A stretch of DNA of 64,000 nt, from NCBI GenBank assembly GCA_020536535.1, contig JAHLWZ010000872.1, positions 570 through 64,569 on the forward strand, read 5' to 3'. Numbering within the stretch: the first letter of the stretch is position 1; the number at the start of each line of letters is the position of its first letter. Under the pieces are notes generated by a model. The model had not been told where the DNA came from. It made no database searches and saw only the letters and a program-made list of their open reading frames with translations. The stretch is from Pelomyxa schiedti (taxonomy: Eukaryota > Protista > Evosea). Position numbers and translations under genes: made by a program. Positions 21,131 through 41,924 of this stretch are shown here, piece by piece.

Positions 21131-22050
21131 CGTGACTCGAGCATAACAGAAGGAGTGTTGGTGACGAAGAGAAACAGACCACTGCCTTGTACCGCTGTGT
21201 TGTATTTATTGCCTTGTGTAGGCGAAAAACCGGCGGCGATTTGTGGTGTTTATTGTGTCGTACCTTTTTTTTATTTTTTATGCGAGCTTACGTTGTCGTA
21301 CATCCGGCTGTTGTAGTGCGATTTTTTTTTATTTTTGTTTAATAATTCTTAATTTTAATTTAGTTTTTTTTTAATTTTTTTTGTTTAATAAAAATTATTC
21401 CTGAAGCAGAATGGACAGCGTCTATTTTTATACTGCAACGACTTTGCAACTCGAGCCAAAACCATTTCTGAGTGTACATTTCTCCCCCACCTCGATAATG
21501 GGAGCAGAGAACACGGATTGTAGTTGGCCAAAGAGTTGTGGTGTTTTGGTGTGTTAGTGCTGTGATGTTAGCGTAATCGTTTATGTATTGTAGTCGACTA
21601 CTGGACATTTCCCAACTCCCATGATTCGTCTATGTTGTAATAGTAAGTTAGACCGACTGCGTGGGTATATAGCGGTATTACTATTTAAAAAAAACAAAGA
21701 AAGCAAGTGAGTGCCGGGTGTTTAGAACACTGCGTTTAGAACATACCTCAGTGTCAGAACGGAACAACTGTAATAACTGAGTGACTAAACAAATACGAGC
21801 GTCGCCGTGTGCAATGTGTGTCATTGGGCATCTCGGTCGTCATACATTTCAAGAGTTTTCAAAATACACTGGGCTCTGGATTTTCGGTTACGGCAGCATA
21901 AACCCTGGAAACAAGTTCACACACCCACTGTATCACATTTAATACAAAATCATAAGGATAACCATAAAAATGGCCAAAAACAAAAAAAAAAAAAATAACA
22001 TAAAAGAAAAGAAAATAAAAGCAACGCAGTGCTGCGGCTACAAAAACAAC

Positions 22051-24696
22051 ATGTCGGACGAACCGCGCGTCATGTTTGTACCTGAGCCTGTGCCGGTGCC
22101 GGCAGCAACACTGCGTGCTTTTGGCATTCCCGAAAACGCGACACCAATAGAGATCTACGAGTTCCTCTATCCCCACGCGTACGTTTTATTGGCAACGATC
22201 CACACCAACAAACCACGCACTCCTTCCCTCGGTTTTTGTTTTTTTGTTGTGGCACTTCTCGAAAATCTCCTATCTTCCTTACGACGAGTAGAAGTGCAAC
22301 CCACATGCCACTCTACAATTTTTGTTTAATGTGAAGTAGAAATCAATACAAATCTTTTCTCTTGTGTGATTTGTTTACACACAATTAGAGCGACTGTGGT
22401 TACTGTTGGGCAGCGAGAACGAGTCATCTATGTCACTTTCTGCACACAGGAAGAGGCCGATGATGCTAAAAATTCCACGCTGAGGCGCGAACTTGTTTTC
22501 AAAGGCGCCGCAATTTGGCTCGTCACGCCCGCCTCCGAATTCGTCTGGAGCAAGAAAAAAATCGACGTCATGCCACACCCGTGGTACTTCGTCATGCAGC
22601 AAAATGTTTACAGGGTGTTCATGGTGCCATATTACGCGAAGGCTGAGCACGTCGCCGAGCACTGGCGCTACTATAAATTCCCAGTGTATGCGTTGACTGT
22701 TCCTTCCTATCTATTCTACGAATAACTGACATTCTGCCTTTGTTCTTTTTTTCTCTCTACAGTGTTGACTGTAAAAGATTTTGTGGGCACTGGTATGTCA
22801 AGTTCTTGTCCAATACTGAGGAACCGCCTGGTTCCACCAAGTGGTATGCCAACAACAAAACTGTCTACACGGCTCCGGCATGCCCCTTGTATTCATTTCT
22901 GACACTATCCTTCTATTCACCTCATCCTTTGAGTGATGGTAATTCTTCATTCTCATTTTATCATTACTAACTTGCTTCAACCTGTAATCACAGAACCCCT
23001 TGCATGTGATTCGCCAATTGACACCCCAGATTCCCCATACCCTCCCCAACAACCAGAACTACCTGTCACATGTGAAGATACAGAGGGCAAACGTGGAGCT
23101 CCCCAATTGTTTAATCTTTACAGCTTATGTTTCTCTTTTAGTTGCAGGGAAAAAACGGTAAAGGGAAGAAGCTTCAATAAATGTACAAGAGGTAACACAA
23201 GGTTTGTTTTACACCCACTTCTCTATGGTTTTCGAGCGTAATTGGCATAAATAGCTCCTTTCAGAGGACCTGATCAATTGGGGTCACCTATGACTTACAC
23301 AGAACAACAAGGTGCAACAGATTCTTGTCTTTTCTCTGCTGTAACATTTCTCTTTAAGTTCCACAAACCGCGAGACCAGCACGAGTTTCTGCCAGCGGAC
23401 CAGATACCCAACACTCTTCAAGTAAGCCCACTTCTCAATGATGATTTTCTGACTAGTTTGTGATAAGTTGCTCCACCTGACCCGATTTACTTCCCATGTG
23501 TGCCTCCCAACACTTTCCTCTTTTGAGCAGTAACACAAATCCCTGCAGTTAAAAGTAATCTCATGGGAAACTGGGAGCTCTTATTTTCTCCTCTCAGAGA
23601 TAGCACTCACATCGCTTATCTCTACACCAGCCACAAGAAATTTATCACAGAGGCCACCGATCTCCTCAAGAAGCGATCCTTGCTGAACGAAGTTGCAGTA
23701 ACAAGGAACGTTTCATCGATAAACATTGTTGGGGATTTGCATGGAAGCTGGGACTGCCTAAAAAAGTATGTTTCCATCTAGATGGATTGCCTCTCTCTGC
23801 CCTTTTTTCCAATTTCTTAAGAGCCATTGCTATCGGAGGAGAACCATCTGATTCCAATTTATGGATTTTCAATGGTACTGTTACAATACGGACTATTTTT
23901 TTTGTTACACCTGTGTACAGGCGACTATGTTGACAGAGGTGCCTTTGGGGTTGATATCTTGGCTGCCTTGTGCCTTCTTGTGACCGCATACCCACGAAGT
24001 GTGTACCTGAACCGCGGCAATCATGAGTGCCCCAGGATCAGTTCTCATGGCCAAAACAATCATTATCAGTGCCTGGAAGAGGTGTATGGCAGTAATGGCA
24101 TGAGGTTGTGGGAGGCATGTGCTGAACTGTACAAGCACCTCCCCCTGGCCACTCTGGTCAATTTTCCCGAGGACCCAGAAATGAAGGGTTGGTTTGTGTG
24201 TCACGGTGGAATAGGCAGTTATGTGACATTGGAATCCATCAGGCAGTCAGAGCGATGTGATTGCACAAGTGTGCCACTTACTTTCTTGTGGTGCCAACTC
24301 ACTCACAAGTCTCCAGATGCAACCCCTCTGTTGAAGGACTTGCTGTGGACTGACCCTTCTGAAGTGAATGGCATGCAGCCCTCATTAACACGCCGCGGTT
24401 TGGAAACCTGGGGTCCTGATGTAACTGAAGCCTTCATTGCTGCAAATAACTTGAGATGGATAATACGAAGTCACGACCACAGCAGGGGAGGCTGGGCCAC
24501 GACGCACAATGGCAATGTTGTTACTGTATTCTCCACTGCGGAACAGGTTGCCAACCCTGTGTTCTTCAGGATGGAATTGCCCTCGCAAAAGTATGGGCCT
24601 GTGCCTCTGGAGGGTGTACAACCAACAGTAAACAAGCTTGCAAGTTTCTACACATCAAAACAAAACACAACCACTGCAGCCCCTCCACAATCCTAA
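22051..24696 (+). CDS. PPP-family Ser/Thr phosphatase with an N-terminal RRM-like region, multi-exon
   Basis: GDLHG, GDYVDRG, RGNHE, HGG, DLLWTDP, RSH and TVFS motifs. Upstream exons contain YVTFCTQEEADDAK (RNP1-like). Single-gene status is inferred. Confidence 0.8.
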
Positions 24697-25006
24697 GAAT
24701 ACCCAAAGAATACCCACGGCAACCAGCCAGTACCCACCCAACAACCCTGTTGTGCAATAACAAATAAGTCCTTTTTACTGTGTTGCCTGGGAGGCAAACC
24801 AGCATTCTCCTAAGTCGCCTTGTTGTTTTTCTTTGTTATTTCAAAATGAAAGATACAAAACTTGGTATCTTTCAGGCACTATGTGTCGGGGTACATCCAC
24901 AAATAGACGACAACCAAGCCGTTTGCATACGGTGATAGCCTATCAGTGGTGTGAGTCGTTTGCATGACCAAAAAGGAGCGGACCTTATTGAAGGTGATGC
25001 TGAGCA

Positions 25007-25461
25007 TTATGACCTGCCCGGGGGTGCCTTCACACCGGCCGATAGTGCGAGCTTCTTGAACTCACCCAGTGACAAAACTCCATCGTGGTTTGTATCACAC
25101 TGTTCAAACAGCAGCCTGGACTTGTCATCGGTCATATTTATCCTGCATTCTTTCCCAACATCCTACGGCAGTTCGTAGTTAAGAAATGAGTAATAAGGTG
25201 TGACACATAAAGCAACGAACGATGCCCCAACACACACACACAGGCACACAACAACAAAACTGTTGTTACAACTACACACACACATACAGCGAGGAAGTGC
25301 TTGGCCTCGTTCCACTCGAGTGTGCCGTTGTGATTTACATCGTACTTTGTGAACAGCACCTGGACTCTCTCGAAGAAGAACCCCACGCCCATGCAGTTGA
25401 TCGCCGCCACGTCATTGTGCAACTCCCTCCGTGCCTCACTGTATGCTGCAACGTTCCCCAT
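25007..25461 (-). CDS. Small EF-hand Ca2+-binding protein with a possible N-myristoylation site
   Basis: Starts MGNVAA; two canonical loops DVNHNGTLEWNE and DTNHDGVLSLGE; one intron. Confidence 0.85.
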
Positions 25462-25601
25462 TGTGTGTGTTGATGTGTATTGAATGGGTTGGGTTCTTTT
25501 TGTTCTTATTGGATGGATGGATGGTGTAACACTGTTGCTTTTGATTGTGTTTATGCGATTTTTCTCAGGGGTTGGTTTCTGGTAAGTTGTGGGTGGGGGT
25601 G

Positions 25602-28600
25602 TCAATTGAGTTGTTTGTTGCCGAGAGGTTGGGGTGCTGTTGTTGTTGCTGTAGTTGTGGGGGGTTGTTGCGATGGAGTTGTGGGTTGTTGGGGAGTGTG
25701 ATCGGCGTCGTCTTGGAATGGTGTTGCGGTGCTGTAAAAGGTTATCAGGCTGTTGAGGAATGTGATGAACTTGTGGAGTGTTGGTGGGAGTTCCGGCATT
25801 TCCGGGGTTATCAGAGACAGCGTCTGGTTGACGTGGTCAACCGTCAATTGAAGGTATTGCAGCCTGCGTTTGTTACTGGTAAGAAAACGGGAAAGACGCG
25901 GTCGCGGGGCATACCACACAGAAAATGGCTCGGTGGTCAGGAGCTCCTGCAATTTTTCTGGGTTATTTGCGTTTGCTTTCAGCGACTCCGAAATATGCTT
26001 GGAACCGATGCGGAGTAATTGCTCGACGAGAACCAATTCCTAAAAAGATAATCACCATAAAAAAGCTAAGAAGTGTGTGACCATGGCTGGTAAAATAGCT
26101 GCCCACTGAGAGATTGTGCAATGAGTTTGCAAGAATATATAAACCGCTGCCACAGCTTGTTCACAGGTCACCTGCTTCGTTAATACATGAAAAACATCTT
26201 CACAGAGTGTTGCCCTTTCCGGAAACTGGAAGCTGTGAGAATGCGGTAGATTAAAATTTATACTACCTCCTGGGTGAGGCTGCAAAACAAGTGCAAGTTG
26301 CGAATGTACACAGTGGCCAGTGCAAATTGGTATTGTGGCTGGAGCACTTTGAGACTTCTCTTGAAAAGACGAGCTCCTTTCCCAATGCATACCATGTCAA
26401 AGAGTGTGTCTTTACCACTGAAAATGGCAATTAGTAAAAAATTGGACTCCGGGATAGTGCTACTTGGAATTAGACGCTAAAACTCCAAAGAGAGTCGCTC
26501 CAATTTCAGCGTTTTTCCTTTCTAGTTTGGCATGCTTTGTGGTTTCATCCCTACGCGCATTAGAGCCCTGTCTGTCAGCATACTGGTACACACAAGTCAT
26601 CATGGTCGTATGGAAGAAGCTTCAGACGTGCAATGTCTTCGAGGTCTAGCAAGTGATTGTAGGCGTTTTCAATTTGTAAAAGCAGTGAATGCTTGGAAGA
26701 GGAAGCCATTGAACCCTGGAATATTTGGAGTTGGAAAATGTTCTAATGGCATTTTAACGTAAACACCATTCTCTCGACAATCTCATCTTAGGAAAGTCAG
26801 TCAGTTTTAAAGGAAATCAGCCATACAATTCTTATAAAGTTGCAGCATCAACCTTGGGGCTTTGGAGATTGGTTCCAATTTTCCGAGAGTACCTTTAGAT
26901 AATTAGCATCTGGGGAAAAAGGGAGGTAATACCTGAAGGAATTCGCACGGGAGGAGAGGGAATACAGTCAAAAAGTGGCCTGTGGCTATAATACGAGACA
27001 ACACTATCGGGAGTTTCATTTTTTGTTTCTGTATTGCTGTGACAAGAAATAGAGACTACTGGGGCATACCAATTTCTCGACATATTCTGTAGTACTCCTC
27101 AAGGAAGGGATAAAAAGGAAGAACTGTTGTACAAAGTTGAACGCTGAGATTTGATAATATTCCTGATAACTCCTCCGCAGACATGAACTTGTGAGTAATG
27201 CGATAATAAACCATGTCCCCAATTGAGTGAGGTGATGGTGGAGGGGGGACTGACATTCTCCAATTTGGTTGGACCATAACCTGGCGTTGATGCAAAGGTG
27301 TTCCCCGGCCAGGTGGTGTTCCTCTGCGAAGATATTACGAGAGAATAAATAACCAAAAACTCAACCTTTCAAAGCGCACAGGGACAGATTTACCTGGGGA
27401 TTGAGCGGACTGCTGTGCAGAAGTCTTTTGTTGCTCACGAGAATGGCTCATTTCTGGATTCTTCAAGATAGTTTTTACTGCCACATGCTCCTTGTCGGGG
27501 CTCCCAAGTAAGGTACGAGCAGGAGAGGCAGAAGTGTTGTAATCTGCCTCAACTTTTCCTTCAAGGGTTTCCACTTGTTCGTGTTGTTGATGCTGCAATT
27601 GGTCAGATAATGAACCTGCATTTTCTGAGAGGGCTGTGGGGACATGGTTTGACTGAGCTTCTGGATCCTGAGTTTGTTCTAGATCTTGCAGTGTTTGTAC
27701 AAAAAATTTTTGTGGGCCTGTAAGTAGGGAATTGAGATGCTGCTGCTGTAACTGCTGAAGAAGCATTTGCATCTGTATACTCGAATGCAGGGGCGGTTGT
27801 GGCTGCACAGGTGGTGTTGCCTTAGTAAAATCGGATTCCAAGTCTTCAACAGACACCATGGCAATAGGAAATGATGTTTGTTGAAGAGACTCAGGAGTAG
27901 AACGTGCCTGTAACACCTCGTGAGCATTCCTGATTGAGAGTCAGAAGACTACAACAACATATGTTGCACATACAAAGTGTCTCTAGGAATTGGTCTCTTC
28001 ATATCTAACCATCAAATTAAAAAAAAAGGGATAACTTGATAAAATTTTACCAGGAGGCGATCCCCAGGTTCTGGCTTCTCCCCACAGTGATGAATTCCAA
28101 GGAATTTGAGGTCTTTCTTGTGGAGGTGCAGTGGCCATGTTAGGAAACATGGTTAAAGGCTTCTGCCATTTTGCATCATTTTGTGCTTGCAGGGTTGTTT
28201 GGGAGTGTGTATCTGTTGTTGAAAAACTGTTACTAACAGAAGATTCATGGAACAGTACCATATTGGGGTACTCCAAAGAGAACTCTGTCTCCTTCCACCA
28301 GTTTACTTGCTGTGTAGTCAGGTTTCCAGTCGTTACCTTGAGCTCTTAGAAAAGCAGGGAATTATGTCTTACTCTCAATTTACCAATAACAATTTCTGAT
28401 CCAAATGTTTCAGAATTCACCTGATCATCATCTGCATTAGGTTGTTCGTTCAAGTCATCACAAGCTTCTTCAGCGAATCCAGAATCACTTTCGGCAGCAA
28501 ACTCACTTGTGCTTGGCAAGAAATTGAATTGGCCGTTGGTTTGATAAGGATAAGCAATATCACCTGTACGGTACAGGTAAGTTGCAATCTCGCAGGGTGC

Positions 28601-29338
28601 CAACTACACACACACATACACAGACACTACAATACACACACACACACACACACACCAGTTGCTATGCGCTGGACCATGTCGGACTCCTCACCGTAGTACT
28701 CCTCCTCCTGGTCCCCCTCGTCGCCCACAATAGTAACCTGCTCCTCCGTGTCGTCGCTATCCCCGCCACCATCCTCCTCGCCCCCGCCCCCTCCCCCTCC
28801 CCCGCCCCCGCCGTAATTGAGCCGATACTGCCACCCCCCCCCGCCTAGCACTGCTGCCCCCGCCCCCTCCCCTCCGTCCCCGCCTCCTTCCCCCGCCTCT
28901 GCCTCGCCCTGTGTCAAGTCGTACTGGTCCGTAGTCCCGTCGGAGCCACTAGATGATGTCGATGTGGTTGTTGACGGCGGCTGTTGCGGCGGTGCATGTG
29001 CCTGCGTGAGAGTGAGTGTGCGTCGGGTTCGGTGTAATATATTACTTAGAACTATTCCATTAAACGACAACGACAATGGCGTTACAAAGACGCACCCCTG
29101 ATGACATTCCCTTTCTTTTGTTGAATGGATTGGGATCTTTCCTGGTGAATGAGATTCTCTCTGTAGAGAACTCTCTTCCTGCAAATGCGGAGGGGATCAG
29201 AGGAGGAGGCTGGGAGCAGGATGCGTGAGCTCTCTGATCAAATATCGGTTCGGAATTGGAACGTCGGTTTATTTGTACAAATTGATTTGGGGTGGTAGAC
29301 GGGCATAGAACGATGTCATCTAAAAGTGCGTTGTGCAT
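25602..29338 (-). CDS. Large multi-exon hypothetical protein (low-complexity; weak RasGEF-N/REM-like segment)
   Basis: Chain of same-strand ORFs with GT-AG junctions. DMVYYRITHKFMSAEELSGIL resembles the REM motif; no CDC25 domain recognised. Confidence 0.5.
28608..28654. repeat. (CA)n intronic microsatellite
   Basis: Interrupted CA runs directly visible. Confidence 0.8.
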
Positions 29339-29411
29339 GCTCCTCCACGAACAATTAATAAATATGAACTAAGAGGGGAGAGATCTTTGTGCGTGACACT
29401 GACGGCGATCT

Positions 29412-31101
29412 ATGTCAATAAAAGAGGGAGGATGGAAGGCAGCCGCTCCACGCAAAGAGAAGTACGCACACATTTTTGTTAAAGTTCATTTTCCGTCGCC
29501 GACGTGGTGCTCTTTCTGCGGCGCTTTCATCTGGGGTATTCATTTTGTCTCGTTTGTTAGGTTTGTAAATTTTTTCGTGCAGGTCTTGGCAAACAGGGAT
29601 TTTGTTGTACACGTATGTTGGTACCATTCTTGCTGAAATTCTTATATCTCTAGAATGTAGATATCCGGCACACAAGTATTGCATGCCAAAAGTACCGAAT
29701 AATTGCGAACCTTCTAAAAAGCCTCCAAAGTTTTCAGAGTATTCCAGAACAGAGTACGCTATCAACCTTGTTTGCGCATTCACTAAATATTCTTGAAGGA
29801 AGGAATTATCTCCAGAAGAGATCGAAAGGCAAGAAAAAGTACGTAAATTTCTTGCAGCAAAGGTGTGTGCAGGAGGTACTGTTGTAGATGAATCCCAACT
29901 CCTTGCTGACTCGAGAAGGCTTGCTTATTAATCTATCTTTCCCCCATAACATTCTTTCAGGGAAGAAGAAGCGAGACTCCATCAAAGTCAAATAAAGAGG
30001 TCAAATGAACTCCGGAGGAGTATGGCTCAGAAGCCGACCAAGAGAATGGGTGAGTTGTGGCTGGAACAACAAAGGCAACAACAGGAGGTATTGCTCAAAT
30101 CCGGAGCACGTACTCACAGGTTTCCAGGCACAGAGTAGAGCCACGGCAGTAACCAAAGCAGCTCCACCTCCCACGCATCAACAACGAAATAAGCTGCAAG
30201 ACAGTTGGAAGACCAACGTTGAATCTTCAGCTGTAAGTCTGGTTACCCTAAAGCTCTCTCACAAATGGGCAGCCAAAAGATACCAAGCCAAAAAGAGATG
30301 ATGTTGTTGTGGCGAAATTATCCGAGGAAGAAAGGGCAGCCAAACGCCAACAGGTAAAGACACCCAGTCGAATTCCCTAACTTGAAAGCAGGTTGCAGCC
30401 ATGGTTATGAAGGGAGGAATGGGTCCAAGACCAAGGCCAACACCCACAACCACAGAAAGCCAAGAGCCCACGGGCGATAACCCGGAACCTGATGCCACTG
30501 ATGAGCCCCCGGCCTCAACCACATCACCAACAACTACACCCTCGCCACCACCCTCGCGGTCTTCCTCTTCACCGCCGCCGCCAATTCCTCCACGCTCCAC
30601 ATCCAGCACCACTCTCACCACCCCTGCGACAGAGGAGTCCGCACAAAGTACAAGCTCCTCAGCCATTGCTACGACGACTTCAACATCAAGCACAAGCACA
30701 AGCACAAGCACAAGCACAAGCACAACCGCAACCACGTCAACAGCCTCCTCTTCCCTTTCCACAGAAATTACTGTATCGGAAAGTGATGCTATTGCAGAAG
30801 CAGAAGAGCTTGCTTTTGACCAATCTTTGACGCACGAGACCGACATAGGAATTAAAATTTCCACAAAGCCAAGGCTAGAACATGTATGTGTACCACTTGT
30901 TTTAATGCACCGATTTCACCTTCCCATAGTTTACCCGAACCGCCGGACCAAGAGGACGACGGCCTCCCCAAAGGCACTGACACCCACCACAAACTCAACA
31001 AAGTAACTGTGATTTACAATGTACGTGAAGAACAGTTGTCAAAAAGCAAAAGAATGTATCAAGAGAACAAAACAGTCTTTTTTTTTTTAATTTATGAGTA
31101 G
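29412..31101 (+). CDS. C1 (DAG/phorbol-ester-binding zinc finger) domain protein with an S/T-rich region
   Basis: Spliced HIFVKVHFPSPTWCSFCGAFIWGLGKQGFCCTQCRYPAHKYCMPKVPNNC fits the C1 Cys/His spacing. The 3' end is approximate. Confidence 0.75.
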
Positions 31102-31124
31102 AGGAGATAAGTCAGCCTTCCCTA

Positions 31125-32752
31125 TCAGGAGCCAAGAGAGTACTTGATTTGGTCTGTGCTGATTGGGGGTGCAATGAGAACAGCGGAAGGAAGCCTCTGC
31201 GTCACAACGTCAACTACCTCGGGCCACTGCATGGGAGCCCTCTTCTTGATGCCCTTGGCTAGGTCCTCGGCCTCTTTCTTCTTCTTTGCTTCCTCCTTCT
31301 GCTTCCTGGCTTCCTCCCTCTTGGCTTTCGCGGCTTCATGCTTCCTCTTCTTCTCCTCTCGCTTCACTTTATTGGCCTCTTTCTTGATTGCTTTGCTGCC
31401 TTCAGACATGTTGCCGTCACTGTCGGAATCAGAACTGTCGTCGGAATCGGAGTCGGGTTCCGGCTCAGACTCGGATTCTTGAGCGTCTGGTACAAAGTCC
31501 ACATGTAGAACCCAATGGCATTCAGGGTGCTCCACGAGTTGGTCTTTTTTACCCTTCTGCAGCTTGACGGTCGTTTTCAGTCCGCCTTCACCTCCAAGAA
31601 CGAACTTCTCCGATTCTTTAGAGTGGTCGTCGTCTTCTTCTTCTTCAACTTCAGCATCTTCGCCAGCCTCTTTTTCACCCTTCCATTTAAAGCCAAAAGC
31701 AGTGCTTACTTGCTTTGCTAGAACCTTAAAATCGGTTTCTTTCGGTTCGCGGATTCCAAAGAGAATTTCATCTTCTTGAAGGTATTCTGTTGAGAAAAAG
31801 AAAATAATGAAATTAGGATGGCTAGGGAAAAAAAATTGGTGTTACCTAAGTGGGTCAGGAAGGACTGGAAGTCAGGAGCCAATCTGTGTACCTGGGGAGG
31901 ATAAATAGAAATTCTATTTGAAAGACCGAATTACCTCAAAGTCCCCAGCAGTATCAACGTCAGGCTTGACCTCCTCATACTCAATTTGAGAAAGAGCCAC
32001 AGCCGCCGGGTTGTGTGGATCGGCGCGATAATCTGCAGTAATTCAGAAAGTAAGTCACCCAGGGGCCAAACACACCTAAAGCGAGCCATTCATGGCCATC
32101 GCCGCATAGAAGCAAGAAGTCCTTTGTGATTCCCCACTCCTCATATGCATCCTTGCTCAAGTTAGAGTAGGAGAAGGGAGTTAGGGCGTACCTTATTATC
32201 AAGCAACGAGTTAGACGAGGCTTCCTCCTCCGACTCATCATCATCATCGCTATCCTCATCACTAGACCTCTTTGACTTCTTCTTTTTTGTGCTTTTGTCA
32301 ACGCCAACTCCAAGGATTTCACCCACAGAAGCATAAGCCTCCTCGCCAGGAGGAATAGGAGCAGCAGCACTGGAAGAAGTAGTAGTACTAGACGCCGCCG
32401 CTGTTGTAGTAGTTGTATTTGACTCAATAAAAGCAGAAAGAGGAAGGATCTTTTCAGCGCGCTCGCCGGGAACTCTTATATACTTCTTTCGCAGCGAGCA
32501 GCCGTTGTGAACCCTAAGGAGCGCGAGATACGGCTCGGGAAGAACCAAGCCAAGCTCCTTGTGCACGAGCTCGGCCCTCTTGCGCAACTCGTCGCCGTCG
32601 ATCGGCGCTCGGTTTTCGTCTTTGTCAGGGGAGAAGATCTCGCGCGGGGGGGAGAAAACAGGGACGGCCACAGCGGCAGGAGTACTGGTTGAGTGCGCGG
32701 ATGCAGATGCGGTCGTTTTGTCCTTGACCACTTTACGCTTCTTTGTCGACAT
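31125..32752 (-). CDS. SMI1/KNR4 (SUKH) family protein, bacterial immunity-protein-like, with introns
   Basis: ELGLVLPEPYLALLRVHNG...EEWGITKDFLLLCGDGHEWLAL|DYR...HRLAPDFQSFLTHL; acidic/basic low-complexity insertions and tail. Confidence 0.85.
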
Positions 32753-32989
32753 TCCGGTGACACGGCTCCTCGGCAACAACCAACAAAGTTTGATGATGTC
32801 TTTTTGTTTTTGAAAATCAACCGGAGATACAAGATTTCTGAAACCCACTCTCAAGAACAACATTGTTTGAAGAAAGGCCATGCAGGCAAGTGATGCCTTA
32901 ATCCCACATCACGAGTTGTACTTAACTTCAAGCGGAGTTGAGCTTCGTTCGAAGAACTTCGCAGAAGCGGGTTCCACACAACAAAACCA

Positions 32990-35900
32990 ATGTCACAGCA
33001 GCAGCCGGCGCAACTCCCTCCACGCCGGCGAGCCCCCTCTCCCCAGCCATCCAAGCAGCCGCAGCCCGCCGACCCAAAACAACAGCAGCCCGCCCCCCCT
33101 TCGTCGTCTTCCCCATCCCCATCCCCATCCCCTGCCTCTTCTTCCACCACCGGGGTGGCGCCGCCGGCTCCCCCGCCGCCGCCCATGCGCCACGCGCCGG
33201 TCCCCGCGCCCGCGGCCGCGGCCTCGACTCCCCCCTCGCTGCGCAGCGGTGCGGTCTCGCCTACCCAGCAGCAGCAGCCGGGGCAGGGGCAGCCCCGCCT
33301 CATCATCACCAAGCCCCCCGCCTGCCTGATCTCCTCACTACAGCAACTGCAACTGGGACCGCCGCAACCACAGCCGCAACAACAACAACAACACCAACAA
33401 AGCACCACTACCGCAACGACGACCGCGTTACGCGAATCCCCGGGCGCCGGTTCGTTAAATGAACCGTTGTCACCGCCCTCGCTATCGACAACGAATTCCT
33501 ATTCATCTTCGTCGTCATCTTCATCATCAACCACAACAACTGCAAATAATACACTCACGCCTACAACTACAAATTCTACTACTACTAACACTCCGACTAC
33601 TAACTGTACTAGTACTTCTACTGCCAACTCTCACCCTCCTTCTCCCTCTTCGTCACCATTGACACTATCCTCCAGTGGTGGTAGTGGTGGTGTTGAGACC
33701 GAGGAAAAGCAAGGGTCTACAGTCCACCATGAAGGGGACAAGGAACCTTCTTCTGTAGTGGATGACGACATTATGTTGATTGCTCCACTGGCCCCGGATG
33801 ACGAGGCTCCTAGTGTTCCTGATGCCCCGGACGAGGAAGCACCCTCTCCGTCTCTGCCCGATGACGAGGCACCGTCACTTCCACCTCAGTCCATGATACT
33901 ATCACCATCGGGCTCTTTGCAGGCAGTTAATCTGTGCGATGGTGATACAGAGGAGGGAATGGACGGGGATGATTTGCCGGCCCCAGCTCCTCCTGTTCTT
34001 GCTTCACTGCACCCTAACGTGACTCCTGGGGAAAACCTCATTACGGGGAAGACTGCAGTAAATACAAGTATTAGCTGCCGTGAAATCCCTAACAGTATAT
34101 CCCCTGTTGCGGTAGGTGGGCAAGAACGGGTCAATGGGAGCCCTACATTACTCTCAAACAGTAACTCTGAATTGAATTCCAGAACTCCCCCAACGAAGCA
34201 ACCACCAAATCACACGGAGGACTCTTTTCCTAGTATTCCAGATCAAGTCATTGATCTTCCGCCTCCTTTAACACTGGCCCCTGTCCCTGCTGTGCAAGCT
34301 CCAGTTCCATCCACTCCCCCTGCACAATTGCCTCCTCCTGTGATTCCCGCTCATACACCAACTTCTCAGGCAGCAGTACAACCGCCACTCATCACTCCCG
34401 TTGCACCTTCCCCAACTCCACAACAACCTGCGGCAACAGTGGCGGCCCCGGCCGAGCAGCAAACTGTCCGCCCCTGCATCCCAACCCCGATTCTCCCAAG
34501 CATCCCAATGCCTGTCCTTCCTTGCATTCCAACACCAATTCTTCCCAAACTACCTTCTTCAGTTCCGGTGGTCCTTCCAGTAATACCTGCACCTTCCCCC
34601 ACAGTACTACTGCCAACTCCAGCCCCAAAGTCCCCCCCAATGGTAGCCACATCACCCACTGCAGCACCACCCTCTTTCATGACTCTATCAAAACCTCCTC
34701 CGCTCCTTCCCACTACATTACCCCCATCTACACTGGTGTCACCGACGATTCCTACAGTATCATTGCCCCACCCTCACCCCAATCTGCCACCCCCACCACC
34801 ACCTTCTTCAGGTTGCAGCCCTACTCTACATCCTTCAGCTCCAAGCAAGGGATTACCACCTCCTTTCCTACATCCACTTGTTGCGAGATTCGGTGCTCAT
34901 TTAGAACCAGAAGCCCCACCAAAATCCACCCCTCCAACAACTGAGCCAACACAAAAACCTCCAAAACGGACACTCTTTCAGCTCTCTTCTGATGATACTG
35001 TGTGCAAATCCTCTTTGGTTTTATGTGCTACTTACTAGCTAAAACTTCCTTAGTGTGATCCACGGATAGTTGCCTCACAGAGAATAATAAGACAATGGAT
35101 TTTCCGAAGATGGATGGGTATGCACAGATGAACTGAAATTACGTCTAACGGTTTTGGGTGTGGAAAAAAGCCAACATTAAAAAAACTGGCAAACAATCTT
35201 CGTTTAGGAGATTGTTGTATAGTCAACGTGAACTAGCACACAAAATGTCAGTTCTTGCATCGTCTTACCTTATTCCTCTTGAGAGAGATGCTGGAAAGAT
35301 GGTTGTTGGCACATTCTTCCTTCATTCTCTTAACACAAATAGTGGCCTGAATTGCTACCTCAACACATTGTAACGTTATTGTCATCGGTAATGATGATTC
35401 AAGAATTGCACGCCCAGATTGTTGATGGCCTTAATAAGGTTGGAGAGTTTCTTTGATGTTGCTAATAAATACAGATTCTTCTATCATGGCCTTGCATCAA
35501 GGGTGTTGGTGCCATTTTTTGTGATTCGGAGATTCGAGGCAAATTTAAAGTATACAGTACGCAGCCATATTTTACAGTTCCCTCCTGGCTGAGTTCCATT
35601 AGGTGTATACCTCGATTCTCTTCATATTGCAGATTCAATACAGAAATTGCAAGATAATTCTCTCCCATTTGCTGTGTGGCACAATCAGGTAACTTATTGT
35701 TAACACATTATCAAATAAACCCAAAAATATACAGCAATTTCTAACTTGTGGTTCCTTGTTTGATGAATTGGTTCACCTGCCGGAGAGTTCACTGCACAAC
35801 ATTCCCACGTTCCTCAAGGGATTATGTTCCGGACCGGCAGAACCTGCAATGCCAATGGGGGCTGAAACTGAAAGCCTTGATCTGGTTCAACTGAATGAAA

Positions 35901-37495
35901 GTGTTCAGTTTTTCCAGCAATTCTGCAAGGTTTTTTCCTTCGTTGGTTGGTTTTTGTAACTTCCGGAAGGTCTTCTCTGAAAGTCAACACCAACGCCTGG
36001 TGAAGAAATATTTCACAGATACAGTAACCAAACTTGGTGGATTCTCTTCTGTGTGAACCACAACATATTTTCGTACTTGTAATCTAATAGAATCCAGCAA
36101 TTCCCAGAGGATATTGGCCGAATCCTATTATATGAAATTGAAGTTCAGCAAGTAAAAAAAAGGAAATCTACTGTGACACTGTATGACAAAAAGATAGGAA
36201 GATAGGGCCTCACTCCTTCCATCTTTAGGAAAGCAGTTGTTTTCAGTGATCAAATTATCCTGGTTACTGCAAAAAAAATAAAGCCAAAGGTGGAGATATA
36301 CGAGAAGACCACGGTCATTAAAATGACAGATGTAGTAGATGTTGTGGATGTAGAGGGTGCAGGTTTGACGGAATTGTTTTTTATGCCCGTATACTAAAAT
36401 TCCCAACGCAGATCCAATGCTTCAATTCAATATCAAGTCTGCAAATAAAATCAAGAAAATTACACTCAAAATGGGGCTACGGGATAAAAACCGAGCCTTT
36501 TCTGCTCTCAAAGACCTTTTGGAACGACGGAAGAATCACATAGGTCGGTAATTTCATTCTGATAGCAAGTTTATCTAACCTTCTCAGTTTTTGGGTCTAA
36601 GCTCAGTGACCTTATTCACAACGAATATCGCGAGCAAATAGGCATCCCGCTACTAGTAGAAAAAGGCTTCTCTTTCCTCGAAAAATGTACCATCAATACT
36701 ACAATCACTCAGATAGCAACATCCACTAACCCGGTCTTAGCTTTAAAGATACAAGGTCTTTTCAGAGTCCCGGGGCACAACCTCGAGATTACGGCACTAA
36801 GGAAGCTGGTGCAAGGTATAATTTTACTTTTTTGTAGTAGATATCTCACTCACACCGACTGTTACAGAGAACTACGAGTATCAGTTCAAACCGGACCAAG
36901 ATGCATTCTCTGTATCTTCGCTTCTGAAAGTATACTTCCGGTACGAAAAATTCTCCCATTTCCAATCGGCTCATATCAAAACAGTGAAATGGCAGAACCC
37001 ATTTTTCCCTTTGATTTGTACGTCCCCATGACGGATCTGCATGACACAGGTTTTCAGAAAATAGAAACAACAAAACAACCACACACAGTACCGGAGGAGG
37101 TACTTATAATCATACAATGCACAACAGAAAAAGAGGAATTCATAACGCGAGTTACGCCGATGCTGAGGGCATTACCGGAATACAACCGCATCACATTGAA
37201 GTACACAATGGACTTCTTCCAGAAGCTCATTGGGCACAGGCAAACAAACAAAATGGATGGTATCATTATTATTACATCACACATACCGCTACCCCTTTCT
37301 AACATACAAACATACAATTAATCCTTCTGCACGGTAATTGAACTCAATTCAGCCAAGAATTTGTCTATAGTCATAGCACCTAATTTTCTGCGGCCTGCTG
37401 TTGAAACACTGGACACTACAACTCAGCTTCCAAAAGTGAACTCTGTATTCGCTAAACTCATTGACTCCTACCCGGAACTATCCCAGCTATTCTGA
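32990..37495 (+). CDS. Proline-rich protein with a degenerate DH(-PH) RhoGEF region and a C-terminal RhoGAP domain, multi-exon
   Basis: RRLLYSQRELAHKMSVLASSYLIPL is DH-like. VFGSKLSDL, IPLLVEK, QGLFRVPG, SSLLKVYFR, LPEYNRITLKY and NLSIVIAPNFLRP are RhoGAP motifs. Confidence 0.8.
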
Positions 37496-37646
37496 TTCCT
37501 TCAAACAGTAGTCTCACATTTCCCTCAGTTCTGGCAACTAGAGGGGTTGTGTAAGTGAAGAGAAGTACATAAGCAATAAAGGCTTTTTTCTTTTTGGACT
37601 ATCGATTTGGTGATATGTCGTTCTACACAGAATAAATGTTCAAACT

Positions 37647-40268
37647 TCAAACGTTTGTGGAGCCTGGGTTTGAGTTAGGGATTGTAACAACAGAGTGAGG
37701 CTGCACACTGTCGGTAACTGTCAGTTCAAACAGTCCGTATTCAGATTTCCACCCAGAAACCAAGATGTAGTAAGGGGTACCGAGTTCTGAGTCCCAAGAT
37801 ACCTGTGATTGTACCCCGCAGGTCGGCCAATCGTCACTCCAGACTATGCAGTTGTCTGTGATCTCGGCACATGATCGTGCAACAGCAATGATTGTGTCGA
37901 ACTCTGTGTATGAAGTGCAAGTACTGGCGGTGATCTGATTACCGGTGCCCAGAACAGAAAACCAGAGCCCTTTGTTTTCTTAGAAAGCGGAGATTTGCTA
38001 TAAACACATACCTGTTGTGCCAATCAAGTTGCACGGTGAGAATGACATACAGGCATTGGTTGTATCGCCTTGGTAAGTTTCGGGAACAACCAGAGGATAG
38101 GCAGTAGCACATTCACAATATGGATCCGGGGAGACTGTGCCCTGGTTAGTGACAATATGAAATGATGTTGTTTGAGGTGAAACTTTCAGAAAAATCTACA
38201 CGGAAGTCTCCAGTTACATTGACTCCTGCAGTGACAAAAATCCAGTACGACTGTCCTCCAAGCGCTTGGAACTGTACTGAGCCTTTCCCAGAACACTCCA
38301 AGGGATCGCTACAACAGCTGAGTTGCAAAAAAGAGTGATAAAGATAACCTTTGTCGTACACAATGCTGGGGGGAACACAAGTTGTAGACTTCAATGGAAA
38401 AAGGCAGGATCGTGTCGTCGTTACATACAGTGGCGAGGATATTACTCACACTTGTGGCGAATGAGAGACTGAACCAACGTCCTGGATGGAGGCTTGGTCA
38501 GGGCGGAGTATGGAGTAGAAGTTCAAAAACCTTGTCGTAGTGAAGAGTCAGTGGCACAATCCCCTTCGGTGAATTCAGCGTTTGAGGTTGTCTGTGAAAA
38601 AGTCATCGGAAGGGTGGTGACAGGCTCAGCATTCCAGCACACAGAATTGTCAACATTGGAAACTGTGGGAATGAGAAGCGAGGAAGATTGCTAGAGAATT
38701 TCTCTACGTGTATCTACAGAAAGGGTAAAAGCTACACCGTCGCTCCCAGAGCGGTAACCCGAAACAGCAATGTAGTAGTACTTGTCGGCTTCAGCACTCC
38801 ACTCAACCTGGAAATGTGGTGAGTTGTAGTACCCTAGAGCCACAGTACTTTCGAGTGGAGCCCGCAGAAATCGTCGTTGGCCGTAACACATGATTGAGCA
38901 ACTGCATTTTCATCACACTCCTCGTAAACTTGAAGAGTAGTATCTCCACTCTATTCATTCAATAGTACTATAATGAAAAGAATACAAAGAAAAAGCATAC
39001 AAGGTTATCAAGCACACAAGTCCAGGCAGTAAGTGCTTCTCCAGTTCCAGCTACGACATACCACAGACCTGGCTTATGGTTAGCTTTGTTTACAGAACCA
39101 GTATCTAACTGTTGGTCTGCACGCTGAAGCAGGAGCTGTAGGTGGAGGGAGTGTTGGCCGTGGACGCAGCAGTTGTATAGGGAAGGCTGATAATTTTTTC
39201 AGCAACTTTGCAGTTATACCAAGTCGGAGAATCCGCTATAAACAGTGAGGGGGTGCTGACACAATTTGTGTACCATCCATTACTGACAAAGTGAACTGTC
39301 CGCGCAGCAGACCTGGTGATGACACAAATATATAATAAGGTACTCCCTCAAGGGTGGGCCAAACAATTTCAGACTGCCAAAGACAAGTATCGTCAACCTA
39401 GATGTGGTCAAAGTGGGGAGGAAACAACATGTCACCCACAAAATTAATGCAGGTTCCAGAGCAGTCGGAATAAAGCTCTATAATAGTGTCAAGCTGCGAG
39501 TTTTCACATGTAGATGCTTTGAGGTCTTTTCCAGTACCAAGAACCACGAACCAGAGGCCTATTGTCCCCTTTAGCTTTGAAGATTTCTTAATAGTAACGC
39601 ACCTACAGCGTCCATATTACGACAGCCGGAAGTAACTGTTTCTGATTTATCATTGTCCCCAGTGAAAGTAAAAGGAAGGGAAGAAATTTCTTCAGCCAAA
39701 GTGCAAAGGTCATTTTTTTCTCCTGGCTAATCTGAGAATCATTTAAATGTAAAAAAGAAGTGAACCTTCATCTGTCAGAGTGAATGAGAAGTCACCAGTG
39801 ACTTTCCCAAAGCCTGTAACAAAAATATAGTAGGTTTCCCCAGCGGTAGTATTCCAGCGCACTTCACTTGAAGTTCCACACGAGTCGTCGTTGTAGGAAA
39901 GGCACTGTTGTGCTATGCCTTTGTAGCACTCCGTGAAGACATACAAAGTTGTATCGAGAGTGGTTTCTCCACAAGTGGAAGCCGCCAATGTTGTGTCCAT
40001 TGCTGGAGTATACATATAGTATACACCTACGAAGCAAAGTCAATTTTAGTGTGTGCACTGCACCACACCAACCTTTTCCAGCAGTATAAATAGGGCTAAT
40101 AGAGCAGTAGAACTGCGAGATCTCTGAAACAGTGGTAGTTGAATCCACTGTGAACGGCAGTTTCTGAATACTGTAGGCAGAATCACAGCTGTCGTAGATT
40201 TCCTCAGCCGTTACACCCAACAGCACCAGGCATAATATAATGCAGATCTGCCTTACCCTTATCGTCAT
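37647..40268 (-). CDS. Secreted protein with about five tandem ~120-aa Cys-containing beta-rich modules
   Basis: Signal peptide (QICIILCLVLLGVTA). Repeated pattern C..A..I..LP.T...GLW(F/Y)...GTG..L.ASTC....DT.I.V...C...DD.CG..S.V.W....G..YYI.V.G....G.F.L. The 3' end is approximate. Confidence 0.8.
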
Positions 40269-40869
40269 CGTTGTGTTACTCTGTCAGTTTCGTTTTTTTT
40301 TTCTTTTTGTTGTTCGTTCGTTTTGTTCGTGTTGTTTTGGCATCTTAAAAGCCGCTCCGAGATCTGTACAACCACGCGTTATGATTTTAGTCAAATAGGG
40401 ACACGGCATGTTACGCACTTTGATTGAATGGGAAACATGGGGCGATGAGTGAGGACGTGTTGATATTTTTCAGATTTGATTGGTGGACGCGGTTCTGAGG
40501 AGACTCGGCTTGTCACTCACCCAGGGCTTCTTGTACGGTACAACTGAAGAGTGCTTGTGCCTGTCTCTTGCCACTGTTTATGGTATTCGAAGCATGCACC
40601 GCATACCGTATGTACAAGCACACGGTCCCTTCTATGGTTTGTGATTGGATCGCCGAAATCCCAGTTCCGGTGGGCATGAGAGCTGCCACCTCAGAACACC
40701 GTGGGGGGAGGGCGAGGGGCACAATCAGGGTGGCTCGGCCAAGGTGTTCTGTCAGTGTTTGAGTTTGAGTTTGATCTCTCTGTAGTGCGCCCGAACGGAA
40801 AAACCCCAGAAACAACAAAACAAAACAAAACCAAAGCGACGAGAAGCAAGCCGGGGAATTGGGTCAAAG

Positions 40870-41924
40870 ATGATGCGCATAATTATGTCAGGGCCTCCCG
40901 CGTCGGGCAAGGGAACTCAGTGCGAAAAAATAGCAACAATGTACGGCGTCAAGCACCTTTCGTCCGGGGATCTACTCAGGGCCGAGGTTCGCCTTTCGTT
41001 TGTTTTTGCCTTTTTCTTCCTTGTTGTGTTTTGGGTGTATTTATAAATTGTACTTAATTAAAATAGGAAACATAATTGTTTCTAATAATAATAATAATAA
41101 TAAAAAAGGTCGCAGCTGGCACTGAGATAGGACTGAAAGCCAAAGCATTTATGGACGCCGGAAAACTTGTTCCTGATGATATTGTTGTACCTCTTGTTGC
41201 TAAGCAGCTAATGACATTCTCAGCGGTAAATGGATTGATTTTAGTCTATGAAATGGTCCTATTTAAAACTTAACACAACTCCATTTCACAAGGGGTGGCT
41301 CCTTGATGGATTCCCAAGGTCAGCAGACCAGGCTGCAGCACTCACAAGGTTGGTTTCTCCTCACGTTGTGGTTGTACTTGATCTCCCTGATCAAGTAGCC
41401 ATTGAGAGGATCACTGGCAGGAGGACTGACCCTGTAACAAACAAAGTGTGTAATTGTAGTTGTACCACCAAATCACAAATGCTACATAAAAAATGGTGTA
41501 GTCGGAATTTGAATTATGATTAATGTTTTACCAGTGCCTCCACCTACATTCCAATAATCAACCCCTGACCAAATCCAGGTGTATCACGTCAAGTTCAACC
41601 CCGCAACAGACCCCATAGTTACTGCCCGCCTCGTACAACGTGATGATGACACAGAGGTCACAATGACCCGCAGGCTTGCTCTCTACAGGTTGTTCACTAA
41701 AACCCAAAACCGCTAGCTATCTAATTTAAGCGGAGTTTAATCCAGTGCCCGCTACATACATCTATGAATATTAATAACATTAACCACTATCACACAGGGC
41801 AAGTGAGGCAGCCTTGTGCGCTGCGTTTGGTGGATTGGTTCACCATGTCAATGCCAATTTACCCATCCCTGATGTGTTCAACCAAATCTCAGGGATACTT
41901 ACACCACTCAAGGCTTCCCTGTGA
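40870..41924 (+). CDS. adk: Adenylate kinase, multi-exon
   Basis: [43 protein letters not shown] and QRDDD motifs; ends LKASL*. Confidence 0.95.

Follow-up and report, generated by a model that had tools for sequence, protein, structure and literature searches.

How does an amoeba come to carry, within its own DNA, a gene resembling those of bacterial toxin immunity, and what does the encoded protein do there? The question is raised by a gene in a contig of Pelomyxa schiedti (JAHLWZ010000872.1, assembly GCA_020536535.1), on the minus strand at 32752..31125 of the 64,000 nucleotide stretch analysed here (contig positions 570 to 64,569). This whole stretch is referred to as the window and its numbering is used throughout. 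An earlier note, made from the letters of the window alone, described a bacterial SUKH (SMI1/KNR4) immunity-like gene with spliceosomal introns. The description holds: all of the motifs quoted are present, there are four GT-AG introns, and the matches to SUKH profiles are collinear. By its motifs and profile matches, the core of the gene is identified as a SUKH-1 (SMI1/KNR4) domain of the bacterial subfamily with the signature EEW..LLLCGDGH.W.ALDYR. It is most likely that the gene was laterally transferred, the nearest relatives being bacterial and the gene being integrated in host DNA rather than carried by a contaminant. The fuller account, in which lateral acquisition from a bacterium, eukaryotic remodelling and exaptation to an endogenous partner are taken jointly, is considered on balance probable.

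The predicted structure of five exons and four introns, derived from the genomic sequence, was confirmed. Its parts are as follows.

32752..31125, minus strand: whole gene from ATG to stop codon, as read from the sequence.
32752-32192, minus strand: exon 1, 187 codons, opening with the ATG and KKRK and encoding the first (N-terminal) half of the SUKH domain together with two inserts of low complexity.
32191-32152, minus strand: intron 1, 40 nt, GT..AG, phase 0.
32151-32076, minus strand: exon 2, 76 nt, 25 aa, the SUKH core strands, sequence DAYEEWGITKDFLLLCGDGHEWLAL.
32075-32033, minus strand: intron 2, 43 nt, GT..AG, phase 1.
32032-31935, minus strand: exon 3, 98 nt, (D)YRADPHNPAAVALSQIEYEEVKPDVDTAGDFE, the variable strands and loop following DYR.
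31934-31892, minus strand: intron 3, 43 nt, GT..AG, phase 0.
31891-31846, minus strand: exon 4, 46 nt, VHRLAPDFQSFLTHL, the SUKH C-terminal helix.
31845-31787, minus strand: intron 4, 59 nt, GT..AG, phase 1.
31786-31125, minus strand: exon 5, 662 nt, 219 codons and TGA, with the C-terminal module, acidic tract and K/E-rich tail.

The exons total 1443 nt, which is 480 codons and a stop, and the reading frame is intact. All four introns have GT..AG ends, and no intron length is a multiple of 3. Retention of intron 1 would bring a stop 9 codons later (open reading frame (ORF) 32162..32881). Intron 2 interrupts the D codon (G/AT) of the AL/DYR motif, and its phase 1 position inside this codon agrees with the earlier note, in which an intron was said to split the motif. 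In bacteria A-[LFM]-DYR is uninterrupted, and excision of each of the four introns from the amoeba gene rejoins junctions that are contiguous there. The P. schiedti assembly has 7.43 introns per gene, and 98.4% of its introns are GT-AG (PMC8887013). A second in-frame ATG is present upstream at 32881, with the frame open for 43 codons beyond the proposed start (32753-32881, minus strand); the exact start codon is therefore either 32752 or 32881.

All searches, alignments and scores were run on single exons or exon segments of the amoeba gene. Exon 1 matches the Pfam family SMI1_KNR4 (PF09346) with 19.9 bits (E=1.2e-3) over profile positions 11-58 of 125. The exon encodes just half of the domain, which is why the score stays under the 25.4-bit Pfam cut-off. 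The motif LG..LP..Y..LL...NG is found in this exon as LGLVLPEPYLALLRVHNG. Two purpose-built profiles give 21.0 and 17.8 bits, hhalign gives a probability of 94%, and an SMI1/KNR4 protein of Ruminococcus is identical to the N-terminal motif at 14 of 22 residues (BLASTP). The extent of this motif is taken from the hmmsearch and hhalign alignments.

32483..32569, minus strand: SUKH N-terminal helix-loop motif LVHKELGLVLPEPYLALLRVHNGCSLRKK (residues 62-90).

Exon 2 carries the motif EEWGITKDFLLLCGDGHEWLAL and exon 4 carries LAPDFQSFLTHL. A tblastn search of the PLSDB plasmids (7.3 Gb) with exon 2 found 36 matching records, with 59-64% identity across 22 residues, and 28 of the 30 listed are annotated as SMI1/KNR4 family (Priestia, Bacillus, Streptomyces). 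Three exons match a profile of the subfamily, built from an alignment of 25 diverse members (A5), and do so in collinear order: exon 1 with 17.8 bits over positions 24-52, exon 2 with 24.8 bits over 91-113, and exon 4 with 7.6 bits over 138-151. Exon 4 is placed on the same terminal helix by hhalign. Exon 3 has no profile score of its own, its conserved positions being DYR and NP only, and a tblastn search of the plasmids with this exon found nothing meaningful.

Alignment with the bacterial proteins follows the same order across the exons. Exon 1 contributes AE..LG..LP..Y..L...NG and, late,.GE.LG.G; exon 2 contributes (Y)EEWG..KD.LLLCGDGH.W.AL; DYR...NP spans intron 2 into exon 3; LAPDF..F...L lies in exon 4, and Y..ED opens exon 5. 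All of the core motifs of the bacterial SUKH-1 (PF09346) DYR subfamily are therefore shared, with 46-51% identity between the amoeba exons and the best 25 members over 67 alignable core columns. Exon 2 was not detected by a generic SUKH profile, which was made from the domains of two other proteins, P0003 and P0004, and plasmid genes found with P0003. With detection by the subfamily profile and not by the generic one, the affinity is to the EEW..GDGH.W.ALDYR subfamily in particular.

A word search with a profile (A4) recovered 258 proteins. Among the 120 listed, which are 120-334 aa in length, every named protein is bacterial, and the genera include Streptomyces, Bacillus, Siminovitchia, Solibacillus, Lentzea, Vibrio and Gracilibacillus, with others. 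Language-model neighbours of one subfamily member fall in clusters that are 100% Bacteria. The chains of yeast Knr4 and FBXO3 in the PDB were not matched by either the subfamily profile or exon 2 (E<=1 or E<=10), nor was any solved SUKH protein in PDB sequence searches with this profile and this exon. A PDB sequence search with the exon 1 core found nothing relevant. The assignment to a bacterial type rather than to the fungal Smi1/Knr4 type, as made in the earlier note, is thus upheld by the naming of the relatives as bacterial and by the lack of a sequence match to Knr4 and FBXO3.

Eukaryotic relatives gave 0 matches in searches with the N-terminal half, in a word search of a limited length range and among the language-model neighbours. 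With the exon 1 core, a word search returned 0 matches, and a large HMMER search returned a sole true match, weak at 35 bits, to P0003, a bacterial-looking double SUKH protein. Matches to a type IX secretion system (T9SS) adhesin and to XRN1 in the same search were rejected as spurious, being due to low complexity. The exon 1 half is too weakly conserved, missing even the bacterial subfamily, so these blanks exclude only orthologues in the libraries with at least about 40% identity. Scans for relative loci in genome contigs and metagenome contigs found none. P0003 (L014) and P0004 (L015) are encoded on bacterial-looking metagenomic contigs and are tandem double-SUKH proteins of 412-449 aa whose tails are rich in lysine; the genes next to them match no Pfam family.

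These comparisons bear on the possibility of vertical descent from an ancient SUKH gene of eukaryotes, the likeness to bacterial proteins coming from a slowly evolving motif and no lineage-specific transfer having occurred. Two old eukaryotic SUKH lineages do exist (PMC3113570), four introns and extensive elaboration in a eukaryotic style indicate long residence, and the eukaryotic searches were those of the N-terminal half or of a restricted range of lengths. Set against this, exon 2 is 59-64% identical to Bacillus and Streptomyces proteins, which is as near as those are to each other, the solved Knr4 and FBXO3 sequences are unmatched, and none of these searches gave a eukaryotic match. A Pfam scan found neither an F-box nor an ApaG (DUF525) domain on any exon. 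The extra C-terminal module, described below, is shared with a bacterial protein linked to a toxin. Vertical descent is therefore thought improbable, and transfer from a bacterium is preferred.

Residence of the gene in the amoeba chromosome is indicated by its setting. It lies 31 kb inside a 64 kb stretch of eukaryotic genes, and its neighbours are intron-bearing or of low complexity. A six-frame search of the genome (52,367,397 bases in 5337 contigs) with the subfamily profile matched this locus and one copy on contig C1103 only. Contig C1103 (19,635 nt) is 99.7-99.9% identical to window positions 21507-41212, with 22 mismatches in about 19 kb and a more divergent end of 576 nt, and the two are 100% identical over a 3.2-kb stretch containing the gene. 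With such identity over 19.6 kb, the copy was rejected as a paralog and is attributed to a haplotig or to assembly redundancy. The count of paralogs proposed as a check in the earlier note thus gives one gene and its haplotig copy, with no subfamily paralog in the 52.4 Mb genome.

A more sceptical explanation is that the locus is not a working gene at all, and that it stems from contaminating bacterial DNA or an error of assembly, or is a pseudogene in decay. The assembly was made from amplified single cells and includes redundant contigs, which lends this some plausibility. It is nevertheless very unlikely, given a location deep in a eukaryotic contig among intron-bearing and low-complexity genes, four introns with lengths that are not multiples of 3 and whose removal restores a collinear domain, a frame intact over 480 codons, and a gene that is identical in both haplotigs. 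The introns and the eukaryotic flanks exclude bacterial contamination, as had been argued in the earlier note from the intron within the DYR motif.

Two side observations concern the surroundings of the gene and the wider genome. The divergent neighbour at 32990-35038 on the plus strand is a 682-codon open frame that is almost wholly P/S/T/Q-rich low-complexity sequence, and its start is 237 nt from the ATG of the SUKH gene, so a bidirectional promoter may serve both. Contig C151 carries another SUKH-like gene, unrelated to this one (68470-71610; ORFs 1261-1689 and 1728-2039 of that stretch). On SMI1_KNR4 its N-terminal motif GVHLPSDLRYHITLHNG reaches 23.8 bits, slightly short of the cut-off. 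This gene is apparently split by at least one intron; it falls outside the DYR subfamily and may be a member of an old eukaryotic lineage such as PGs2.

Around the conserved core, the amoeba protein carries a number of additional regions. Its N-terminal extension of 55 residues begins MSTKKRK, in which the KKRK resembles a classical nuclear localisation signal. The regions outside the conserved core, in the order of the protein, are these.

32732..32743, minus strand: KKRK (residues 4-7), similar to a classical nuclear localisation signal, as read from the sequence.
32360..32422, minus strand: T/S/A-rich low-complexity insert (residues 111-131), located by the alignments.
32213..32290, minus strand: basic-then-acidic insert TKKKKSKRSSDEDSDDDDESEEEASS (residues 155-180), before the EEW motif, with no counterpart in the bacterial relatives.
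31488..31766, minus strand: uncharacterised module in exon 5, pattern FG..E.D..L..V.TA.G ... HPEC.W.L..D, with a counterpart in the bacterial relative P0124.
31413..31487, minus strand: acidic S/D/E tract, from the exon 5 translation.
31239..31394, minus strand: K/E-rich tail, with sub-threshold compositional matches to CAF1A_acidic and SR-25.

The T/S/A-rich insert occupies the place of a conserved bacterial motif, PTSW..DH. The earlier note had proposed several eukaryotic-style additions, namely the KKRK N-terminus, S/T-rich and acidic inserts and a K/E tail. These are lineage-specific, none being found in the bacterial relatives. In comparison with the bacterial subfamily, the amoeba gene is distinguished by its four introns, two inserts, KKRK, acidic tract and K/E tail, and its product is 480 aa rather than 120-270 aa. 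A role for KKRK in nuclear localisation is putative.

Residues have also been lost. In the subfamily alignment of 25 sequences the invariant columns are N, G, T, W, H, G, I, E, W, P, G, D, Y and L, and 9 of these 14 are retained in the amoeba protein (NG, the G of GI, EW, G, DY and L). Of the others, I is changed to V, H to Y and P to T, with T and W falling in the gap or low-complexity insert. The W column should be seen as only nearly invariant (at least 90%), since it is also absent from P0124. The amoeba protein is without the PTSW..DH residues and without P105 of the bacterial subfamily.

The top-ranked relative, P0124, is a protein of 267 aa from metagenomic contigs, and it is this protein that connects exon 5 with bacteria. 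Its C-terminal extension, residues 151-267 (L037:1349-1699), follows the SUKH domain for about 100 residues and can be aligned with exon 5 over roughly the first 100 residues of that exon. BLASTP gives E=6e-4 for this match, and the Smith-Waterman score is 61 against 26-27 +/- 5 for shuffled sequences, none of 6000 shuffles scoring as high. Other long members of the subfamily also have extensions at the C-terminus, but these score no better than background, and the module has so far been seen in P0124 and the amoeba gene only. The module has no Pfam family and no relatives among the plasmids by tblastn, and a language-model search with exon 5 gave no usable match. AlphaFold2 models of it are of low confidence, with a predicted local distance difference test (pLDDT) of 40-67 within P0124 and a mean of 54 for exon 5 alone. 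A degenerate second SUKH repeat, hinted at by MAFFT, was considered as its origin and is unsupported, hhalign giving a probability of 0.3%. The HPEC.W module is perhaps an accessory domain of immunity proteins that has not been described before.

The SUKH part of P0124 is modelled as a confident SUKH fold, with pLDDT >90 over residues 1-150, and the structures nearest to the model are YobK, BF1740, Lin2189-type proteins and Knr4. The match of the model to the RhsP-WHH/RhsPI chain is weak (rank 21, E 0.19, probability 0.63). RhsPI (PDB 8bd1) is the immunity protein of the RhsP WHH nuclease toxin. It is like P0124 in being paired with a WHH nuclease toxin, and perhaps also in having a SUKH-type fold, the weak match of the P0124 model being the basis for this; it has no detectable sequence similarity to the amoeba gene.

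Within bacteria the subfamily consists of immunity proteins. Inspection of the genes beside the closest bacterial homologues, as had been proposed in the earlier note, found that two adjoin genes of HNH-superfamily nucleases. P0124 starts 50 bp downstream of an ORF with a C-terminal Colicin-DNase/WHH nuclease domain of the HNH superfamily (E=1e-28 and 2e-17), and a nuclease ORF followed by P0124 is the classical arrangement of a polymorphic toxin and its immunity gene. Neighbourhoods of WHH and SUKH genes have been described by Zhang, Iyer and Aravind in 2011 (PMC3113570). In Streptomyces the homologue comes after a gene that bears the annotation HNH endonuclease family protein and that matches Pfam GmrSD_C with E=8.9e-12, and HNH_4 only below threshold. 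The plasmid copies in Bacillus and Priestia look like orphan immunity genes. Beside another subfamily member, P0108, is an upstream ORF (L044:1-432) that overlaps the P0108 start by one base and has 143 C-terminal residues without a Pfam family. Such an overlap is typical of a toxin-immunity pair, and the region may therefore hold an undescribed toxin domain.

With toxin genes beside its relatives, the amoeba protein might be an antitoxin still in use, as the earlier note had supposed, of the same bacterial origin, retained by the amoeba and targeted to the nucleus, where it would neutralise HNH/WHH-type nucleases of prey or resident bacteria. The core motifs of the SUKH domain, and apparently the second module, have been conserved despite the gain of four introns, and the KKRK N-terminus and K/E tail fit nuclear targeting. 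The host, as the earlier note had supposed for this amoeba, lives with bacterial endosymbionts (PMC10579272). This explanation is nonetheless doubtful. An immunity protein is specific to its cognate toxin, and repertoires used in defence generally grow, whereas the amoeba has a single gene without a paralog from the subfamily. The T, W, H and P of the subfamily have been lost or replaced by an insert, amounting to three invariant residues and, when P0124 is counted, one nearly invariant residue (the W, at least 90%). WHH and colicin-DNase polymorphic toxins are chiefly weapons used between bacteria (PMC3113570, PMC3482391). In contrast to the toxin-linked bacterial members, the amoeba gene is not adjoined by a toxin gene, its neighbours being eukaryotic low-complexity genes. 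Across the amoeba genome no match to Colicin-DNase or WHH exceeds the cut-off, the best being 18.2 and 15.8 bits, which is chance level.

The characterised eukaryotic SUKH proteins, Smi1/Knr4, FBXO3 and PGs2, have all been exapted to endogenous protein binding (PMC3113570), which is a further point against an antitoxin role. Exaptation is favoured for the amoeba protein because of the endogenous roles of all of these, its single copy, the residues lost and the absence of a toxin nearby. Its present function is most likely endogenous protein binding, judging from the comparison with these proteins. The sequence of events would begin with an old lateral transfer from a bacterium into the Pelomyxa/Archamoebae lineage, both the direction and the age of the transfer being presumptive. 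The gene transferred was probably already of two modules, SUKH and the uncharacterised HPEC.W C-terminal module. Four spliceosomal introns, the KKRK N-terminus, the acidic tract and the K/E-rich tail would have been gained later, with the T/S/A-rich and basic/acidic inserts placed in what would be surface loops. The conserved SUKH fold would still be a protein-clamping module, now presumably exapted to an endogenous partner, probably nuclear or nucleolar, rather than kept as a dedicated antidote.

Several points weigh against acquisition followed by exaptation. The homology of the C-terminal module comes from a single pairwise comparison, that of the amoeba gene with P0124. Proteins of the Bacillus type and of the Streptomyces type are equally near to the amoeba gene (46-51%), so no donor clade stands out. 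Since the searches of eukaryotes used the N-terminal half or limited lengths, orthologues could exist unseen. The putative localisation and binding partner are suggested by composition only. In addition, with both ancestral modules so strongly conserved, retention of the ancestral anti-nuclease function would be an equally good reading.

Compared with the SUKH proteins already known from eukaryotes, the amoeba protein has both likenesses and differences. Yeast Smi1/Knr4, animal and plant FBXO3/SKIP16, and PGs2, the old lineages, also represent SUKH domains in eukaryotes that are ultimately of bacterial origin (PMC3113570). Knr4, a protein-interaction hub, resembles the amoeba protein in having long regions flanking the domain, which in Knr4 are disordered. 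The amoeba gene differs from Knr4 and FBXO3 in keeping the signatures of a bacterial subfamily, and the F-box and ApaG domain of FBXO3 are absent from it. Sporadic transfers of SUKH genes to eukaryotes have been described for the Arabidopsis At3g50340 type and for SUKH-4 with an F-box in filamentous fungi (PMC3113570). These are the same kind of event, the lineage-restricted acquisition of a bacterial SUKH immunity domain, but the present case differs in its recipient, one of the Archamoebae, as well as in its subfamily and domain additions.

No paper on this SUKH case in the amoeba was found in the literature. The recruitment of SUKH immunity domains by eukaryotes, including sporadic transfers, has already been published (PMC3113570; PMC3482391), and the novelty is an extension of this published pattern (Zhang et al. 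2011, 2012) to the Archamoebae, with the shared C-terminal module as a small new detail. The gene is one further entry in the inventory of lateral transfers in Pelomyxa. It is conceivable, and here regarded as unlikely, that a two-module bacterial immunity protein has become a nucleus-targeted antidote protecting chromatin from HNH/WHH-type effectors of bacteria that are eaten or housed, which, if true, would represent an innate defence by borrowed antitoxin in a protist. Acquisition followed by exaptation, if true, would provide a clean, intron-dated case of a part of a bacterial conflict system turned into an ordinary eukaryotic gene, and one for which a toxin-linked bacterial relative of matching two-module architecture has been identified. 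The Colicin-DNase/WHH domain encoded upstream of P0124 bears on the question of whether SUKH proteins of eukaryotes keep the ancestral mode of nuclease binding or are always exapted.

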